Assembly: GCA_018985225.1 (NCBI GenBank)
Contig: JADGIF010000593.1
Span: 1-6,276, forward strand
Length of the DNA: 6,276 bases
Origin: Amoeboradix gromovi X-113
Taxonomy: Eukaryota; Fungi; Sanchytriomycota
Direction of reading: 5' to 3'
This document shows, one piece after another, positions 1 through 6,276 of the stretch. The stretch's first letter is position 1. Each line of letters opens with the position of its first letter. Position numbers and translations under genes: made by a program. The notes below the pieces were generated by a model. It saw nothing but the letters and a program-made list of their open reading frames with translations. It had not been told where the DNA came from and made no database searches.

Positions 1-437
1 GCTTAGAGACTCGGAGACCTCATATATTTGAACGAGATGCAGGGTCTTCTAGTTTTATTTTAAAAAGAGGAATACAATCAATGAAAGAGTCTTGGTATAA
101 CAGAAGATCTTTTATTAATGATAGCATTTCCTGCGTATGGTGCACCTTCTTTAAAAACGAGTTAGTCTAGTTTTTATATTTGGTGTCCCAAAGGATGGTT
201 TGACTATACAGTTAGGTAGAATCCTGATTATGTAACATACAGCTACGAGAAAATTCACTATTTGTAATCTCACAAAATCTATAGCTGCGGCTGCTTGCTT
301 GTGCAGATAAAAGTCTATCTTGTTTTGCAGTATATTCTAAAAACAGAAGTGTTTCAATATCTTTGGATTCAGCACTTATCTTATTTTCGCTGAAATAGTG
401 GTATAAATAATTTTTTGATATTTTTCAATACTCCCTT

Positions 438-2234
438 ATGCGTTCAGTCATTAGAAAATTGAGTACCTTTTCGAATCAAAGCAAGTTGCCCAGACTTCCG
501 ATCCCTTCCTTGAATGATTCTCTTGTTTATTATATGGCCAGTGTGAAAGCTATTCAAGATAACAAGGCTTCTATAAACAAGACTGCTGCGAAAGTAAATT
601 CCTTCGAGGCGGTAGGAAACAAGCTTCGCCAGTTTTTGCAGGCTTATGATGAGAAGCAGCCTAATAGCTGGCTTGAGAAGATATGGCTTGATAAAGCTTA
701 CAACATTTGGAGAGTGCCGATTATGGTCAACGTTAACTGGTGGACCTTATTTCGTGATGTGCCAAAATACTCAGTTAGAAACACCACTGGCTATTCAGAT
801 GTTCAGCTAAATCGTGCCTCTTCCTTAGTTCATGCTTTATTGCAAATGAATAACGCGATTAATAAACAACTTTTGCCATCTGATAAACTTAAAAATGGTC
901 AGTATATGTGTATGAATCAGTTAAAGTGCATGTTCCAAGCATATCGAACTCCAGTAAATCCTATTGATCAAACTCGCACTTTATGGCCTACAGACAGCAA
1001 TCATATAGTTGTGCTGATTGATGACCAGCTATTTAAGATGCAAGTGGATCCAAAATGGAAGATTTCAGATTTCAAATATTTATTTGAAAAGATAACCAAC
1101 ACTGAAATTGACAAGAGGCAATCTCATGTTGGTGCGTTTACTGCAATTGATCGTGCACAATGGGCCTCGATGTATTCTAAACTGAGCAAAGATGAGTTAA
1201 ACAAAGAGTCTTTAGATACCATAAAAAATGCTTTGTTTGCCGTTGCTTTGGATAATGTTGGGTGGGATGATCAATCGTCTAGTGTGAAGGCTTTGTTTCA
1301 TAATTATGGCAAGAATAGATGGTTTGATGTTGGTTTAACTATCGCTATTGATAACAATGGTAGGGCCGGCTGCAACGGAGAGCATAGCCCCTGTGATGCA
1401 ATTGTACCTGCTAATATGTTTGATCATATCTTGAAGAATGAGGAAAACGCTCAATTACCCTCTACCGCTGTAAATGGAGAAATTAAACAGTTGAAATTTA
1501 ATATAGCAAGAGAAACCGAGGTTGATATAGCAAATGCTGAAAAAGCTGCATCGCAGTATGCAGCAAACATTGAAGTCGAACTTTTACATTTTAATGATTA
1601 TGGTAGCGACTTCATTAAGAAGCTGGGCAAATGTAGTCCAGATGCTTTTATTCAGTTGGTGCTACAATTGTCATATTACAAAACACATGGCCACATCGAC
1701 GCTACATATGAAAGCGCATCAACCAGACTTTTCAAACATGGAAGAACAGAAACATGCAGAAGTGCTAGCTCAGAAATGAAAGAATTTGTCAAATTGTTTT
1801 ATAGAACTAGTCCAGGCAGAAGATGGGAACTAGCGGACAAACCAATGAAATCTCATGTAGCGCAACTAACTAGATGTACACAGGGTCTTGGTATCGATAG
1901 GTTATTTCTAGGACTAAAAGAAATGTCAATACTTCATAAAGACGAGCTATCAGATGCAGAGCACAAGATTATTAAAGATTTCTATGAAGATTTAAATTTC
2001 CAAAAATCTAACACTTTTATCTTAAGCACCAGCAATGTATCCCCTGGGACTTGGCATTACGGAGGGTTCGGACCAGTTGCAGTAAATGGATACGGTGTTA
2101 ACTATTCAATTGCCAATGATGGATTAAAGTTTAGCATCAGCGGGTGGAAGGGAACTAAAGCCAATATAAACGAGTTGAAATCAAATATCCATACGGTGCT
2201 ACTTGATTTTAAAAACGCTATTAATAGTAAATGA
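438..2234 (+). CDS. Carnitine O-acyltransferase (choline/carnitine acyltransferase family; CAT2/CRAT- or CPT2-like), probably mitochondrial
   Basis: 598-aa ORF with family motifs LPRLPIPSL, NRWFD, catalytic-His motif GEHSPCDA, SPDAFIQL, YESASTRLFKHGRTET, LSTS and GFGPV..GYG.NY. The N-terminus (MRSVIRKLSTFS) is Arg/Lys/Ser-rich and acid-free, like a mitochondrial presequence. Subfamily not resolved by eye. Confidence 0.95.
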   Translation: MRSVIRKLSTFSNQSKLPRLPIPSLNDSLVYYMASVKAIQDNKASINKTAAKVNSFEAVGNKLRQFLQAYDEKQPNSWLEKIWLDKAYNIWRVPIMVNVNWWTLFRDVPKYSVRNTTGYSDVQLNRASSLVHALLQMNNAINKQLLPSDKLKNGQYMCMNQLKCMFQAYRTPVNPIDQTRTLWPTDSNHIVVLIDDQLFKMQVDPKWKISDFKYLFEKITNTEIDKRQSHVGAFTAIDRAQWASMYSKLSKDELNKESLDTIKNALFAVALDNVGWDDQSSSVKALFHNYGKNRWFDVGLTIAIDNNGRAGCNGEHSPCDAIVPANMFDHILKNEENAQLPSTAVNGEIKQLKFNIARETEVDIANAEKAASQYAANIEVELLHFNDYGSDFIKKLGKCSPDAFIQLVLQLSYYKTHGHIDATYESASTRLFKHGRTETCRSASSEMKEFVKLFYRTSPGRRWELADKPMKSHVAQLTRCTQGLGIDRLFLGLKEMSILHKDELSDAEHKIIKDFYEDLNFQKSNTFILSTSNVSPGTWHYGGFGPVAVNGYGVNYSIANDGLKFSISGWKGTKANINELKSNIHTVLLDFKNAINSK

Positions 2235-2235
2235 T

Positions 2236-2610
2236 TTATTCATCTAATTTACCGAGTTCTTCTACAGGCTCAATTCCTAACTCTGTCAAGGTTGGTTTTA
2301 ACTCTTCAATGGCCTGCTTGTAGTTCTTGAGATTTCCGCCGAATTGATACTTGTCTTTCAATCCTTCCAAACAGCGTAGAGCAAGCCCGTATTGATTCAG
2401 CTTTCTACAGGAAAGCAAAGCTTCAACAATTACTCCTTTTGGAGGTACTACATCATGAGAGAATGCATTATTTAGTAATCTAATAAGATCAAACTGGGAA
2501 TCACAATCTTTGAATTGCTGAGTGAAATATGGCGTGTATTTAGCAGGCTGTGAAAGTTCCATCAGTTTATGTGCATGATCCAAAGATCGCAAAATTCTAC
2601 GAAGGAACAT
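2236..2610 (-). CDS. COX6: Cytochrome c oxidase subunit 5A (fungal subunit VI)
   Basis: 124 aa. FDLIRLLNNAFSHDVVPPKGVIVEALLSCRKLNQYGLALRCLEGLKDK and LKPTLTELGI..VEELG match the COX5A/Cox6 consensus. MFLRRILRS looks like a mitochondrial presequence. Confidence 0.93.
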   Translation of the reverse strand: MFLRRILRSLDHAHKLMELSQPAKYTPYFTQQFKDCDSQFDLIRLLNNAFSHDVVPPKGVIVEALLSCRKLNQYGLALRCLEGLKDKYQFGGNLKNYKQAIEELKPTLTELGIEPVEELGKLDE

Positions 2611-2749
2611 GTTTGAGATTTCCCCATATTACAGCAGCTTGACTATGAATAAACCATTTATCGCGAATTTGTATATATTTTTGTATCATTTCAATACTTT
2701 TCCAGATTTTTTTAATAGCTCAAATACTCGATATTCTTCCTTTTCGCAA

Positions 2750-2792
2750 ATGGTAAATCAATTCTAAATAAATAATTAACAGGTACAGCATA
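2750..2792 (+). pseudogene. Short remnant of the IS607 TnpA (serine recombinase) N-terminus, copy 1
   Basis: ATGGTAAAT at 2750, then CAATTCTAAATAAATAATTAACAGGTACAGCATA (NSK*IINRYSI). Aligns with the HTH remnant in copy 2 after a ~29-bp deletion. Confidence 0.55.
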
Positions 2793-3215
2793 CAAAGACA
2801 TATGATCTGATATTCTTATCATCGTTCAATACGAGCCAGATGCTAAGTAGCTTGTCGAGCAAGGTCGAAAGAAAACATGGCTACAATGTCCCATTACGCA
2901 TTCAAGGAACGCTTGAAGTTCAAGTGTAAGCAAAGAGGAAAGACGATGGTCGAATGCAATGAATCATTTACTAGTCAGACATGTACAAGGCGTGGTACTT
3001 TAAAGAAAACCAACTTAGAAACCTACACCTGTACCAATTGTCATTTGGAAATAGATAGAGACCATATGTCAGCAAGGATCATATACATCAAGTGTATGCA
3101 TCCTTATTCAATCCCGCCTCAGGGTAGTGAAAGCGCGAGCGATTGCTGTAACGGAGAAACTAGTATTAGTTTCTCTGTGGAACTTCTCGATTTTCTCGGA
3201 AATCAGGACTTTTAA
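2792..3215 (+). pseudogene. Fanzor2/TnpB C-terminal fragment (RuvC-II, Zn finger, RuvC-III), frameshifted
   Basis: 2792-2875 reads TKTYDLIFLSSFNTSQMLSSLSSKVERK. After a +1 shift, 2877-3215 reads MATMSHYAFKERL...NESFTSQTCTRRG...CTNC..EIDRDHMSARII. This fits Fanzor2 YDxIxLPxFxTSxM, SHYxFxxRL, ExxTSxxCxxCG, CxxC and DRDxNAARNI. RuvC-I is absent and the first CxxC is broken (CTRR). Confidence 0.88.
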
Positions 3216-3235
3216 CGAGGAGTGGATTATGAGAT
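3096..3235 (+). ncRNA. Putative Fanzor2 omegaRNA, copy 1 (scaffold ~3096-3215 plus variable 3' guide ~3216-3235)
   Basis: Best conserved part of all three copies. Invariant TAGTGAAAGC (3125-3134), a 12-bp hairpin (3151-3162/3167-3178) and a sharp loss of homology after TTTTAA. Its position at the 3' end of the TnpB-like ORF is the established omegaRNA location. Boundaries approximate. Confidence 0.72.
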
Positions 3236-3600
3236 AATCATATTGGTAGGAACTTTGTGTGGATTGAGAGCTGTAGGCAGCAAAGAAAAAATAGAAGCAA
3301 TTATTTGGTGTTTATTTGTAGAATTCAGAAAACTATGAATTCAACTTAAGCAATAAGAAGAAAAATCTTGCCCGTTGTGTATCAGATCACCATTCTACAA
3401 TCATCTTTTGTAAGTTTTACCTGCTTGAATTTTCGGACAGATCAACAGTAAAAGTTTACTATAAAAAGACAAAAAACTGTGGAAATTGGTAGAGTTTTGG
3501 GGTTTAAATATATAATGCTTGTAGATGACCACACATTCATGAGGTGACGCACTCTCAATGAAAAGGTACAAGGTGATCTGATTTTGAACGGGCTGTTTCA

Positions 3601-3740
3601 AAAACTTGTATTACTTCTGCTTAAAAGTCCTGATTTCCGAGAAAATCGAGAATTTCCACAGAGAAACTAATGCTAGTTTCTCCGTTACAGTGATCTCTCA
3701 CGCTTTCACTACCCTGAGGCGGGATTGAATAAGGATGCAG
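3601..3740 (-). ncRNA. Putative Fanzor2 omegaRNA, copy 2 (scaffold 3740-3621, guide ~3620-3601)
   Basis: Colinear with the copy 1 scaffold without indels. Hairpin 3658-3685 has the same stem with a changed loop (GCAT vs GTAT). The 3' flank GCAGAAGTAATACAAG is different. Confidence 0.7.
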
Positions 3741-4002
3741 ATACTTGTATATGTTCCTTGCTGCCATATAGTCTCTTTCTAGGCATTGAAAGACATCTAA
3801 TTGTTCCATGTTTGGATCAGTTCCTCAACGTTGATCAATTTATGCTCTACCAGTTATTTCTTTAGAGTTGACATATTCGGGATTACATCCATTAATTCCA
3901 TTTACCATTTGTGAAAAGGAAGAATATCGAGTATTTAAGCTATAGGAAGAGTCATGAAATTATACAAAAATCCATACAAATTCGCGATAAATGATTTATT
4001 CA
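3621..4002 (-). mobile_element. Non-autonomous IS607-like/Fanzor2 element, copy 2 (382 bp, inverted relative to copy 1)
   Basis: Reverse complement starts TGAATAAATCATTTATCGCGAATTTGTAT and ends GGAAATCAGGACTTTTAA. A tnpA HTH scrap is fused at ~3781 to the Fanzor RuvC-III scrap ERDYMAARNIYKYLHPYSIPPQG. Confidence 0.85.
3781..3908 (-). pseudogene. IS607-family TnpA serine recombinase N-terminal MerR-type HTH remnant
   Basis: From ATG 3908: MVNGINGCNPEYVNSKEIT. After a frameshift (4-nt gap relative to copy 1), 3831-3781 reads TLRN*SKHGTIRCLSMP, with TGA where TGG is expected. This matches the IS607 TnpA HTH pattern Y....E.......TLR.W...G.I...R.P. Confidence 0.75.
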
Positions 4003-4088
4003 AGAAAACAATCGAGCTGGTTTCATAGAAATGATAGCTGATCAAGAAAAGTTACAACTCTGTAGTTTGTATAGCATTTATTTATTAA

Positions 4089-4925
4089 TCACCATGTTAT
4101 ACTCTTTTTGTCTACAACAGTTTGCTCCAAAACAGTCCATAAAGTACCCTCCATGTCAAATAGTAACCATTTTCCATCTACATATCCTATTTTAGCTGAT
4201 TTAATCTTTAAAGTAGGGTGAAAATAGCTCGTATCAACGATTGCATTACTGTAACCAATGCTCGTATTCTGTGTATAAAAATGTACAGTATTCTCGCTAC
4301 TAACTACAAGATAGTCATGATAATTCAAATCTGTGATGTTGCCACCCATTAGTCCTCTGCGATATTCTTTGGTCAGTTCACCATTACCTATGCTGTATTG
4401 CCTAATTATGGTTCCTCTTTCACTGCAAGTAAATATAAACTCATTATTGGCATGCATTTTAGTTATGCTGTGATTGTGCGGTGTTATAGAATACATCGGG
4501 TATAAAGATTGGATGTTAAACAAAATCAATACATTTTTGATGGTATAAACCAAATGGGTATCTAGTAAACAAATTAGGGATGTGCTAGTGAGTTCTATCT
4601 TGTTAATCAATATCAAATCATTCATTCCATATATGTAGAGATGATCAGCACTGACAACGAGATACTGGCGATTCATGTTTATATACTTGACAACATCTTT
4701 GTACTGCATTTCTCCAATAATCGAGTCTCTTTTTATATTTTTGACTGTTAACTGGTTTTTTTGACTATATGCTACTAATGAAGTATTATATAGCAATTCT
4801 ATGACATCTACTTGCGTTTGTGAGTTATAAAAAGATCCAAAAGGATTTATATTATATAGAGAGTAACCGCTATCTGTCGTGATGGCACATGTGGTAGAAT
4901 CTTGATTAAAAGTTATTGAGTTCAT
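4089..4925 (-). CDS. ATG18: Autophagy PROPPIN, ATG18/WIPI family WD40 protein (compact)
   Basis: MNSITFNQDSTTCAITT..GYSLYNINPF, IELLYNTSLVA, INMNRQYLVV, HNHSI and CSERGTIIR..S...GEL.KEYRRG (F/LRRG phosphoinositide-binding motif). Start set at ATG 4925 because NQD lies at the family N-terminus. An upstream in-frame ATG exists at 4994. Paralogue (Atg18/Atg21/Hsv2) not certain. Confidence 0.82.
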   Translation of the reverse strand: MNSITFNQDSTTCAITTDSGYSLYNINPFGSFYNSQTQVDVIELLYNTSLVAYSQKNQLTVKNIKRDSIIGEMQYKDVVKYINMNRQYLVVSADHLYIYGMNDLILINKIELTSTSLICLLDTHLVYTIKNVLILFNIQSLYPMYSITPHNHSITKMHANNEFIFTCSERGTIIRQYSIGNGELTKEYRRGLMGGNITDLNYHDYLVVSSENTVHFYTQNTSIGYSNAIVDTSYFHPTLKIKSAKIGYVDGKWLLFDMEGTLWTVLEQTVVDKKSITW

Positions 4926-4954
4926 TCGTAACCAAAACACGGGTAATATTCTGG

Positions 4955-5620
4955 ATGAGACAAGGAAAGGATTTGCAAGGTATTTTGTCAGCATACTTAT
5001 CAAATAGTAAGCATTTGCAACACCATCATAATTTGAAAGATTCCTGGATACCAGTCAGTATTATCAGGAAGTATAATTCTATGAAAGAATTTACAATCAA
5101 TGATATTGTTGCTGCAGGAATGGCCAGCAACTGTATTAAATTAAACGATAATTTTACGGCATTGAAGTGGATAGGAAACCAACGCGGAAAGTTAAAAAAA
5201 ATTCCAAAGAGTGTAAACAACAATAGCATTTTCAAGGTGGAGTTGCCTCCAATTGATAAACAAACGATAAAAATTATGTTTAAAGATTACGGGAACGTCA
5301 AATTCATTGACCAACATGTCGATTCAAATATCGCTTATGTTCATTTAGAGATAATGGAGAATCCCAATCAGATGCAAACGAATCCGGTATTTGACTTGCT
5401 CGAGTCTTTTACAAACAGCTATCCATCTTTTAAGATAAATCTATTGGACTTTTCCGCGAAAGAATCATACCTTAGCTCTTATAGGAGCAGGAATAACAAA
5501 AAGGTTAAAAAGAAACGAAGTAAAACTACAAATAAGAATATAATGGGCATTAAAAAGAAGGGTGAACCGTTGCCGGACATCCAATTTAACAGTATTGTGG
5601 CAGGATTGAATAAATTGTAA
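4955..5620 (+). CDS. La-related RNA-binding protein (divergent La motif + xRRM-like domain + basic tail; LARP7/La-like)
   Basis: AYLSNS..., WIPVSIIRKYNSMKEFT, IVAA..SNCIKLNDN resemble a La motif. IFKVELP.IDKQTIKIMFKDYGNVKFID...IAYVHL and INLLD..KESYL resemble an xRRM. The tail is K/R-rich, like an NLS. The track start at 4916 is TTG; the first ATG is 4955. Confidence 0.65.
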   Translation: MRQGKDLQGILSAYLSNSKHLQHHHNLKDSWIPVSIIRKYNSMKEFTINDIVAAGMASNCIKLNDNFTALKWIGNQRGKLKKIPKSVNNNSIFKVELPPIDKQTIKIMFKDYGNVKFIDQHVDSNIAYVHLEIMENPNQMQTNPVFDLLESFTNSYPSFKINLLDFSAKESYLSSYRSRNNKKVKKKRSKTTNKNIMGIKKKGEPLPDIQFNSIVAGLNKL

Positions 5621-5760
5621 TTTACTTCACTCTAGCCTTGTTAAAAGTCCTGATTTCAGAGAATAAAGAATTTCCACAGAGAAACTGATAACTCCAGTTT
5701 CCCCGTTAAAATAGTCGCTTATGCTTTCACTAGCCCGAGGCAGGATTACTTAGAGATGCA
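5621..5760 (-). ncRNA. Putative Fanzor2 omegaRNA, copy 3 (scaffold 5760-5641, guide ~5640-5621)
   Basis: Keeps TAGTGAAAGC and the 12-bp stem (5676-5687/5695-5706) with a compensatory A-U to G-C change and an A-U to G-U change. Unique 3' flank CAAGGCTAGAGTGAAGTAAA. Confidence 0.7.
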
Positions 5761-5978
5761 TATATTTAAATTGTATTTTCTTTGCTATCGTGTAAACCTC
5801 ATTTACTTTCAAATGACAATGAACAGCATACTTCTCCAAGTTGGTTTTCTTCAAGTGCCACAGTTATACATTTTTGACTGGTAAACATAAACTTATTTGA
5901 ACCATTTCTGTATTTTATATCTATTAGATATGTTTAGATTTGACATATTTGGGATGGCACTAATTGGGGCCCATTTGC
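5641..5978 (-). mobile_element. Non-autonomous IS607-like/Fanzor2 element, copy 3 (most diverged; left terminus not visible)
   Basis: The right end TTAAAAGTCCTGATTTC at 5641 is identical to 3621. On the minus strand, 5885-5810 gives a frameshifted FTSQKC..CGT.KKTNLEKY Zn-finger scrap. 5933-5955 matches 3861-3883, and GCAAATGG (5978-5971) begins a tnpA scrap reading HPKYVKSKHI.NRYKI. Confidence 0.8.
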
Positions 5979-5984
5979 AATTTA

Positions 5985-6160
5985 TGATAGAAATTATGAA
6001 GAGTTTTACACCGTTGAAGATTTAAAATGTCAAACTTGAAGTTTAGGAAAAAAATTCCTGGGTCCATTTTGGACCCAACATTCTAAATTACTCCAACAGT
6101 TGAGGCTTTTCATCCTCTGTAAATCATGAGTTTGTAGTATCGACGTAATACTACTGAAAA
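5985..6160 (-). ncRNA. Putative Fanzor1 omegaRNA (scaffold ~6160-6005, guide ~6004-5985)
   Basis: Immediately 3' of the Fanzor1 stop. Stems: GTAGTAT/ATACTAC (6134-6154), GAGG/CCTC (6102-6117), TGGGTCCA/TGGACCCA (6059-6077), AGGAA/TTCCT (6045-6059). Long-range complementarity between 6118-6125 and 6005-6010 or 6019-6024. Confidence 0.62.
6005..6029 (-). repeat. Candidate right terminus/TIR of a Fanzor1-carrying transposon (TTTACACCGTTGAAGATTTAAAATG on +)
   Basis: Lies at the end of the structured region 3' of the Fanzor1 ORF. From memory it resembles the CATTTTAAATCTTCAAGGGTGTAAA-type ends of Fanzor elements in large DNA viruses (not verified). The partner TIR would be outside the window. Confidence 0.45.
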
Positions 6161-6276
6161 ATTCTTTGGAGATAAGCCGGTCTAGCTATGCCTTGAATAG
6201 CGTTCCTGGCTACCTTCCAAATATTTCTTGAGGCATTTGTATCTCTGTTCCACAGCCTTGAACAAGTCTTACACTT
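6151..6276 (-). CDS. Fanzor1 (eukaryotic TnpB-family RNA-guided endonuclease), C-terminal 41 aa; gene extends beyond the window
   Basis: Hand translation from 6276: KCKTCSRLWNRDTNASRNIWKVARNAIQGIARPAYLQRIFQ* (TAG at 6153-6151). CxxC, WNRDxNAxRNI (RuvC-III Asp) and G..RPxYLxR are the characteristic Fanzor1 C-terminus. Intactness upstream is unknown. Confidence 0.88.
   Translation of the reverse strand, partial: KCKTCSRLWNRDTNASRNIWKVARNAIQGIARPAYLQRIFQ

Follow-up and report, generated by a model that had tools for sequence, protein, structure and literature searches.

Probable relics of an IS607/Fanzor2 mini-transposon family in the fungus Amoeboradix gromovi

What the RNA-guided Fanzor nucleases of eukaryotes do in nature is still deduced from TnpB, their bacterial counterpart. 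Here we report on a 6,276-nt stretch of the genome of the sanchytrid fungus Amoeboradix gromovi X-113 (contig JADGIF010000593.1 of assembly GCA_018985225.1, positions 1 to 6,276; hereafter the window, by which the whole stretch is meant), in which the intergenic space between host genes holds three copies, A, B and C, of one repeat. These copies are probably internally deleted, non-autonomous IS607/Fanzor2 mini-transposons, decaying relics that form no working guide library. The original prediction saw in them a dispersed, CRISPR-like repertoire of guides for a Fanzor2 encoded elsewhere in the genome. That view found no footing: no intact cognate effector was found in the assembly, the guides of the three copies match only themselves in the genome, and the right end is not specially conserved. 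The family looks inactive as a guide system today, because no intact cognate nuclease was found and all parts of the element decay at one rate.

Three copies of one element

The presence of three copies, as originally predicted, is borne out by a repeat search of the window, a three-way alignment and covariance-model scores. The repeat search found an inverted repeat of 135 nt, 92% complementary, between 3089-3223 and 3613-3747, further inverted repeats of the left end (LE) at 2646-2758 and 3900-4002, and direct repeats that join regions 3621-3746 and 5641-5767. In the alignment the right part is common to A, B and C up to GGACTTTTAA, at 3215, 3621 and 5641, and a covariance model of the right end (RE) scores the copies at 148.6 (A), 140.8 (B) and 107.3 (C) bits. 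The parts of the three copies are as follows.

2635-3222, + strand: copy A, a roughly complete mini-element of 588 nt, type 1, 88% identical to the family consensus
2635-2749, + strand: copy A LE, with the CAG junction, CTTGACTA and conserved non-coding sequence to the tnpA start codon
2750-2876, + strand: copy A remnant of the tnpA start (ATG at 2750) and deletion junction region
2877-3215, + strand: copy A Fanzor2 C-terminal remnant open reading frame (ORF), 112 aa, Pfam Cas12f1-like_TNB
3100-3222, + strand: copy A RE, omegaRNA-like scaffold
3223-3242, + strand: copy A true flank, at the guide position, unique in the genome
3614-4019, - strand: copy B, a mini-element of 406 nt, type 2 (bigger internal deletion)
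3621-3809, - strand: copy B remnant ORF, 62 aa
3614-3736, - strand: copy B RE, candidate scaffold, terminal heptamer mutated to GCAGAAG
3594-3613, - strand: copy B true flank, at the guide position, unique in the genome
5634 to ~5978, - strand: copy C, a degenerate copy, 72% identical to the consensus over 5636-5885
5634-5757, - strand: copy C RE, candidate scaffold, hairpin retained, terminal heptamer CAAGGCT
5614-5633, - strand: copy C true flank, at the guide position, unique in the genome

The expectation that no copy encodes a full protein also held, the remnants amounting to 112 aa in copy A and 62 aa in copy B, with no remnant ORF for copy C in the ORF list of the window. Residues 6-69 of the copy A frame match Pfam Cas12f1-like_TNB (E=3.9e-16), and of the Fanzor2 motifs the frame retains the zinc finger, DRD and the rearranged Glu (NESFTSQTC), with RuvC-I absent. 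Copy A is also without 6 nt (TTTTCT) of the left terminus and without a 29-nt segment of the tnpA head. Copy B is 88% identical to the consensus in its LE (3900-4019) and 93% in its RE part. Copy C, judged by its 72% consensus identity and its degenerate left part, is old; weak similarity internal to the LE extends to 5955-5978, and the first ~110 nt of its LE are unrecognisable.

Family identity, anatomy and abundance

Across the assembly (10.55 Mb in 1319 contigs), a typical element measures ~560-625 nt, and copy A is typical. Each mini-element consists of a non-coding LE of ~115 nt, the first tnpA codons, the last 60-145 codons of Fanzor2, and an RE that overlaps the tail of the ORF; the LE may contain a promoter and TnpA-binding sites. 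The middles differ among copies, representing at least three distinct internal deletions of one parent, each of them amplified, with ends identical in kind. In the longer variants among the sister copies, the ATG is followed by MVNGINRCNPEYVKSKEITNRYSIHSSTLRNW, a helix-turn-helix head of the MerR type, as in the TnpA of IS607 elements. The translation of sister copies, MVNGI...RYSIHSSTLRNW, agrees with the MerR-type tnpA head of two nearly complete elements on contigs C459 and C542, where the corresponding stretches are FDVSDTQLRKW and YQVSSGTLRN*, respectively. An origin from an element with a serine-recombinase TnpA is thus supported, and the window copies retain the first tnpA codons only.

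The reading of the repeat as an IS607-type element with Fanzor2 was borne out by the TNB domain, by the alignment of the C542 protein with the Fanzor2 ApmFz2 (see below), by the tnpA head and by linked resolvase sequence: the Resolvase domain (PF00239) occurs at 12 loci only in the genome, and 10 of the 12 adjoin Fanzor2 sequence. On these sequence features the family assignment is sound.

A genome-wide count, which the original prediction had proposed, gave 674 first-look candidates for the right end (40 of 40 scored were 91-100% identical) and 560 for the TNB domain (all 150 scored exceeded the Pfam cut-off). The family thus numbers several hundred copies (560-674 first-look candidates) and makes up ~3% of the genomic DNA. 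The trio within 3.3 kb is unsurprising, because at ~1 copy per 16 kb some 7% of copies are expected to have two more within 3.3 kb on either side; a second copy was present in ~9 of 60 fetched 3.1-kb loci. A literature search did not find sanchytrid fungi together with transposon terms, and this abundant IS607/Fanzor2 mini-transposon family has apparently gone unreported.

Older right ends, 68-77% identical, adjoin young copies at L027:2656-2862, L025:567-770, L043:2030-2232 and L008:476-683, implying that this family, or a sister to it, had spread at least once before. Two loci on different contigs, L136 (C240:15263-16065) and L144 (C512:12729-13534), have a common mutated terminus, TAACAAGTAG, and nearly identical first 8 nt of flank (AATGTAAC); their likeness suggests a segmental duplication or uncollapsed alleles, not independent insertions.

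Borders and target motif

Borders were read from distinct copies extracted with their flanks from fetched genomic loci, in growing sets of 49, 98 and 113. Within these 49-113 copies, conservation is ~87-92% for the LE and likewise for the RE, and the flanks lie at a background identity of 0.28-0.30. On the right, homology runs 7 nt past TTTTAA (consensus CGAGGAG, exact in 46 of 98 copies, copy A having CGAGGAG, copy B GCAGAAG and copy C CAAGGCT) before conservation falls to background. The common right end that had been described is therefore shared as far as GGACTTTTAA, as stated, but its true stop lies 7 nt further on, and the flanks then taken as unrelated open with 7 bases of the element. 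Because homology extends this far past TTTTAA, the guides quoted earlier each begin with element sequence; the true flanks begin at 3223 (+), 3613 (-) and 5633 (-).

On the left, the family begins at CAGCT[C/T]GA[C/T]T[A/G]TTTTCT, 17 nt upstream of 2646 (copy A at 2635, copy B at 4019), which moves the originally assigned start at 2646 by 17 nt, to CAGCT. The canonical left terminus, in two sub-variants, is present in 85 of 98 copies, and [A/T][A/G] is favoured at the two bases 5' of the left-junction CAG (0.55-0.59 bit each). The ends are retained at both sides, are asymmetric and lack terminal inverted repeats, and no target-site duplication was seen among the 49-113 copies, except in two unusual ones, L029 and L030.

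The left junction [A/T][A/G]CAG and the right terminus GGAG have AG in common, as seen in junction logos and in two pseudo-empty sites only. By analogy, this CAG/GAG end logic, new here, appears to mirror that of bacterial IS607.

Search for a cognate Fanzor2

The original prediction placed the Fanzor2 for these guides elsewhere in the genome. No intact cognate Fanzor2 was found in the assembly, which holds only three broken longer remnants (on C385, C565 and C977). A complete RuvC (D, rearranged E, D) with a zinc finger in one open frame is absent from the window copies and from the cognate family, and the full set of Fanzor2 features occurs only in a single-copy gene of another family, that on C542 (locus L071). 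This gene has an open frame of 671 aa with HTH_OrfB_IS605 and TNB domains, and its D, rearranged E and D residues are all present. Its best solved relative is mimivirus L79, the Fanzor2 ApmFz2 (9b0l, E=1.6e-13); the two proteins align at the DPG aspartate, at the DRD motif and at the rearranged Glu that precedes the zinc finger. The rearranged Glu corresponds to ApmFz2 E467 and lies in TEEFTSQTC in C542 and in NESFTSQTC in copy A. Database relatives at 29-38% identity, some of them brown-algal, carry the TnpB domains PF12323, PF01385 and PF07282, and the closest relatives are Fanzor2 or IS607-type TnpB, not Fanzor1.

The C542 element, on the sequence comparisons made, is not the parent of the mini-elements and belongs to another family. 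The mini-element tail is 49% identical to the C542 Fanzor2, DNA comparison with the window copies found no similarity between the C542 element and the mini-elements, both C542 ends are single-copy in the genome, and a covariance model built from 40 mini right ends found no match at the C542 right end, which is unrelated to theirs. With the same model, a right-end match at the expected position of a further element (L069, on C392) reached 10.6 bits (E=2.2), was judged too weak and was not used.

When 456 aa of the C542 Fanzor2 served as a probe, only C542 itself was full-length, and nearly all other matches covered the last ~100 residues only (both among the best 93 of 445 candidates). Longer remnants of the true parent were found on C385 and C565; they have 92% DNA identity to the mini consensus and reach the RuvC-I DPG motif, and both are broken by stops and frameshifts. 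A family-specific probe of 90 aa, from the part absent from mini-elements, gave at least 87% identity only in C385, C565 and C977, and all other matches began at the deletion junction (among the best 150 of 153). The cognate Fanzor2 is thus gone or unassembled in this assembly.

Several full-length relatives have an arrangement that is new here: their Fanzor2 ORF has an N-terminal extension of ~200 codons, and tnpA lies within it in a different reading frame.

L071 (C542), 2767-3488, minus strand: nested tnpA
L062 (C459), 1219-2050: nested tnpA
L065, L066, L067, L069 and L070: nested tnpA

In 10 diverged loci, the region spanned by tnpA (~1540 codons in all) contains 6 stops in the +1 frame and 121 in the +2 frame; the +1 frame of the host genes in the window, used for comparison, contains 6.5-11 stops per 100 codons. 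The N-terminal extension of Fanzor2 is conserved at 35-38% identity. In C542 and C459 the Fanzor2 ATG lies 7-8 nt downstream of the tnpA ATG, and this spacing suggests that both proteins could be made by leaky scanning of one mRNA.

The C542 and C459 elements have complementary defects. In C542 the Fanzor2 frame is open but tnpA is stopped, by a TAG at ~3397-3399 (minus strand), at the expected Trp of the tnpA GTLRNW helix-turn-helix. In C459 (L062) tnpA is open but the Fanzor2 frame is interrupted by one TAA, at 2798-2800. The idea that this TAA strikes the catalytic Glu was withdrawn, as the ApmFz2 alignment puts the catalytic Glu before the zinc finger; the frame is broken all the same.

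Decay of the copies

The first 29 loci had been picked by similarity to the right end of copy A, and decay was measured instead on copies found through the protein domain. Pairwise identity is 0.87 in the LE, 0.86-0.90 in the coding remnant and 0.89 in the RE. Private substitutions, defined as an allele in at most 2 of 74 copies not selected by their ends and used as a proxy for change after insertion, occur per site at 0.020-0.022 in both LE and RE and at 0.014-0.018 in the middle and coding remnant. Among these 74 copies there is no sign of a scaffold kept by selection, the RE rate being equal to that of the LE and not below that of the coding remnant. The original prediction had named right ends decaying at the same rate as internal sequence as an observation that would tell against it, and the right ends do decay at the same rate as the LE and the coding remnant. 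It had also named the lack of an intact Fanzor2 in the genome, and none of the cognate family was found in the assembly.

The guides fared no better as a library. Each of the 18-nt corrected flanks of A, B and C matches the genome perfectly at its own site only, so that guide targets beyond the own locus are lacking for the three flanks at this level. With two mismatches, 3, 5 and 1 genomic matches were found for A, B and C, versus 0, 3 and 3 for reversed-pattern controls. Since any transposon that inserts acquires a new flank, the variety of flanks among the copies does not point to a guide library.

The right end as a candidate omegaRNA scaffold

The right end does have the position and layout of an omegaRNA gene, with a constant scaffold that overlaps the end of the ORF and abuts a variable flank, and in this respect the original prediction stands. 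The last 180 nt of copy A have a folding energy of -54.1 kcal/mol (z = -3.0) and include an 11-bp hairpin at 3152-3177; pairing is also possible between the terminal CGAGGAG and CUUCUCG at 3183-3189, ~30 nt upstream. In 63 right ends, 83.7% of the cells in two hand-drawn helices are paired, versus 42.6-58% with slid partners, and the apical pair is swapped from A-U to G-C in four old copies, copy C included.

RNAalifold, applied to the 63 right ends, returned only a trivial 5-pair stem. It missed the hairpin because two hairpin variants (an AAA versus a CAT arm, and a 3-nt apical insert) break the alignment. Rfam held no match for the right end at E <= 1. A role of the right end as an omegaRNA scaffold is plausible from these sequence features and is not proven.

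A proposed life cycle and possible homing scars

The parent was an IS607-type DNA transposon encoding a serine-recombinase TnpA and a Fanzor2 RNA-guided nuclease, and its mini-elements would have been excised and inserted by TnpA supplied in trans, with crossover at an AG dinucleotide beside the target 5'-[A/T][A/G]CAG. A transcript running through the right end into the flank could become an omegaRNA whose guide matches only the element's own empty site, and position -3, which is C in the target (RCAG, the predicted target-adjacent motif or TAM) versus G in the element's own GGAG, would tell the empty site from self. While a cognate Fanzor2 existed, such an omegaRNA would have served the selfish retention or homing of its own copy, not defence. 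The guide of each mini-element would then protect only its own insertion, and the guides are thus not a repertoire. In bacterial IS607 the insertion target is TGGG and crossover takes place at GG; because UCGG forms the end of the omegaRNA scaffold, the filled site is spared; bacterial TnpB cuts the emptied donor joint, whereupon the element is copied back (10.1101/2023.11.20.567912; 10.1101/2023.08.09.552727).

Two of the 113 copies covered by a scar survey carry repeats of an unusual kind. In L030 (C485, ~1494-1948, minus strand) a 13-nt direct repeat of the right flank, TATCCGCTGTTTT, stands right after the left-junction CAG, and in L029 (C489, ~1075-1634, plus strand) a 9-nt direct repeat of the right flank, TTCAATAAA, stands at the same place. 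In each a microhomology (TTTT or AATAAA) marks the fusion of the repeat to the LE, which has lost its first 12-17 bases. Both repeats start at offset 0 after the CAG and the GAG, precisely where the sequence that a guide would match begins, and this gives independent support for the borders at these points. No such repeat can come from a serine-recombinase crossover of 2 bp. A site that had been emptied, leaving CAG and flank, might instead have been cut some 15-25 nt into the guide match and the element copied from a filled chromatid or homologue, the final joining relying on microhomology and not on full homology. It is doubtful that the two copies record, as fossil scars, an RNA-guided homing by cut-and-copy in the nucleus of a eukaryote, and template-switch chimeras arising from amplified DNA (PMC8371127) could also explain them. 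If the homing reading were true, omegaRNAs of the family and their cognate Fanzor2 would once have been active in vivo, with a CAG TAM, and mini-elements, the three window copies included, would have been retained by a nuclease acting in trans.

Alternative explanations

It seems very unlikely that the protein-less copies are kept as a dispersed, CRISPR-like repertoire whose guides act in trans with a Fanzor2 elsewhere, for example that of C542, beyond retention of the element itself. The intact 671-aa C542 frame with its D, rearranged E and D would be a fitting effector, its stopped tnpA and single-copy ends might suit a domesticated gene, its ends follow the same CAG...GAG logic on inspection, and bacterial PATEs with omegaRNAs that need TnpB in trans have been discussed (PMC10055086). 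But the C542 element and the mini-elements have no detectable DNA similarity and tails only 49% identical, the mini right-end model is silent at the C542 right end, right ends are no more conserved than the rest of the element, the guides are local flanks with no other perfect genomic target, and the terminal heptamers are mutated in copies B and C. Still less probable is that the host has co-opted the copies as promoter or terminator modules at gene ends, as might be thought from the 25 nt between copy A and the COX5A start, the ~70 nt between copy B and the PROPPIN stop and the 13 nt between copy C and the RRM_3-like stop; in so gene-dense a genome any intergenic insertion adjoins a gene end, and there is no conservation signal.

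The family might instead be alive as a selfish element, with an unassembled master carrying tnpA and Fanzor2, copies mobilised in trans and omegaRNA-guided cut-and-copy homing. Young copies with ~2% private substitutions, many open remnant frames of 144-145 aa, at least one apparently open tnpA (C459) and the incompleteness of the assembly (PMC8371127) speak for it, as do L030 and L029 (2 of 113), whose flank repeats are those expected from microhomology-mediated completion of copy-repair at a cut empty site. We nevertheless hold a living family to be unlikely: no intact cognate Fanzor2 appeared (among the best 93 of 445 and 150 of 153 candidates), all three longer remnants carry stops or frameshifts, and the possible scars number two only and could be mimicked by chimeras of whole-genome amplification.

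The interpretation as decaying, non-autonomous relics is preferred over these, and several points weigh against it. The assembly is fragmented (1319 contigs) and was made from whole-genome-amplified cells, at ~92% completeness (PMC8371127), and a 3-kb master flanked by sequence repeated ~600-fold could have failed to assemble. Many copies are young (~2% private substitutions), and activity may be recent or ongoing. The right ends are at most presumed silent: a search for RNA runs listed none for this stretch, and the genome paper describes no transcriptome of a sanchytrid (PMC8371127). The function of a few copies is compatible with uniform decay of individual copies. Covariation in the right end is weak, with 7 pairs changed on both sides versus 3.1 in shuffles and a covariation score that fails to exceed the shuffled controls in 103 of 500 cases. 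The AG crossover and the CAG TAM, finally, are suggested by junction logos and two unusual copies only.

Gene context of the window

The window is gene-dense and AT-rich. The ORF list and a domain search gave the following host genes.

438-2234, + strand: carnitine/choline acyltransferase gene
2236-2610, - strand: COX5A gene
4089-5003, - strand: PROPPIN/WD40 gene
~5078-5620, + strand: RRM_3-like gene

The start of copy A lies 25 nt from the start codon of COX5A (2610), on its upstream side, which means that the COX5A promoter must be in or past the element. Copy B ends ~70 nt beyond the stop of the PROPPIN gene (4089). Copy C ends 13 nt beyond the stop of the RRM_3-like gene, and its flank overlaps that stop codon (5618-5620). 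Every window copy thus lies 13-70 nt from a host start or stop codon (gaps 2610-2635, 4019-4089 and 5620-5634). A spacer of 391 nt (3223-3613) separates the tail-to-tail copies A and B and contains a 22-nt inverted repeat, 82% complementary, at 3370-3391 and 3572-3593.

Significance and comparison with known systems

A genome with several hundred mini-copies is a compact natural record of the IS607/Fanzor2 life cycle, from burst through deletion derivatives and nuclease loss to neutral decay. It offers a testable prediction for TAM recognition and self-avoidance (RCAG versus GGAG), and the sanchytrid genome is a place in which to seek in-vivo homing scars. Any transposon of the TnpB family will by default look like one scaffold with many guides, and this look is no evidence of a guide library.

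The family resembles the IS607-Fanzor2 transposons of eukaryotes and giant viruses (PMC3627910; PMC10530073; 9b0l) in that its full-length relatives carry a serine-recombinase tnpA and a Fanzor2, with the Glu in its rearranged place ahead of the zinc finger, a conserved RE that is non-coding or overlaps the ORF and abuts the flank, and neither terminal inverted repeats nor target duplications. Unlike those transposons, the window copies retain very little of either gene, the junctions carry CAG/GAG and not GGG, and the copy number reaches hundreds in 10.5 Mb; mimivirus has 3, and the Fanzor copies of a single genome are put at "up to 122" (PMC10530073).

With the bacterial IS607 elements and IStrons that encode TnpA(S) and TnpB (ISXfa1, CboIStron; 10.1101/2023.08.09.552727, 10.1101/2023.11.20.567912), the family would have in common a crossover dinucleotide present in both TAM and scaffold end, with a difference at position -3 (TGGG versus UCGG in the bacterial elements, [A/G]CAG versus GGAG here). 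By the same analogy, a putative omegaRNA would overlap the end of the nuclease ORF, the right flank would be the guide and the function would be retention of the element. In contrast to the bacterial elements, the dinucleotide would be AG and not GG, the setting is a eukaryotic nucleus, a group I intron is lacking, and the full-length relatives nest tnpA in another frame inside the Fanzor2 ORF.

By analogy, the window elements resemble eukaryotic counterparts of bacterial PATEs or of MITEs. Protein-less relatives that need a nuclease in trans, which the original prediction had invoked, have indeed been discussed for bacteria as PATEs (PMC10055086). Like PATEs and minimal IS200/IS605 elements (PMC10055086), the mini-elements are protein-less, retain both ends and a candidate guide-RNA gene, and would need transposase and nuclease in trans. 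PATEs are prokaryotic and are moved as single-stranded DNA by a Y1 transposase (PMC10055086); unlike them, the parent here is an IS607 element (serine recombinase) in a eukaryote, coding remnants are retained and no intact cognate nuclease is left in the assembly. Like eukaryotic MITEs, they are short, internally deleted derivatives of a few hundred nt, present in hundreds of copies and enriched between genes; unlike MITEs, they have no terminal inverted repeats or target-site duplication, and of their asymmetric ends one appears to be the remnant of a guide-RNA gene.

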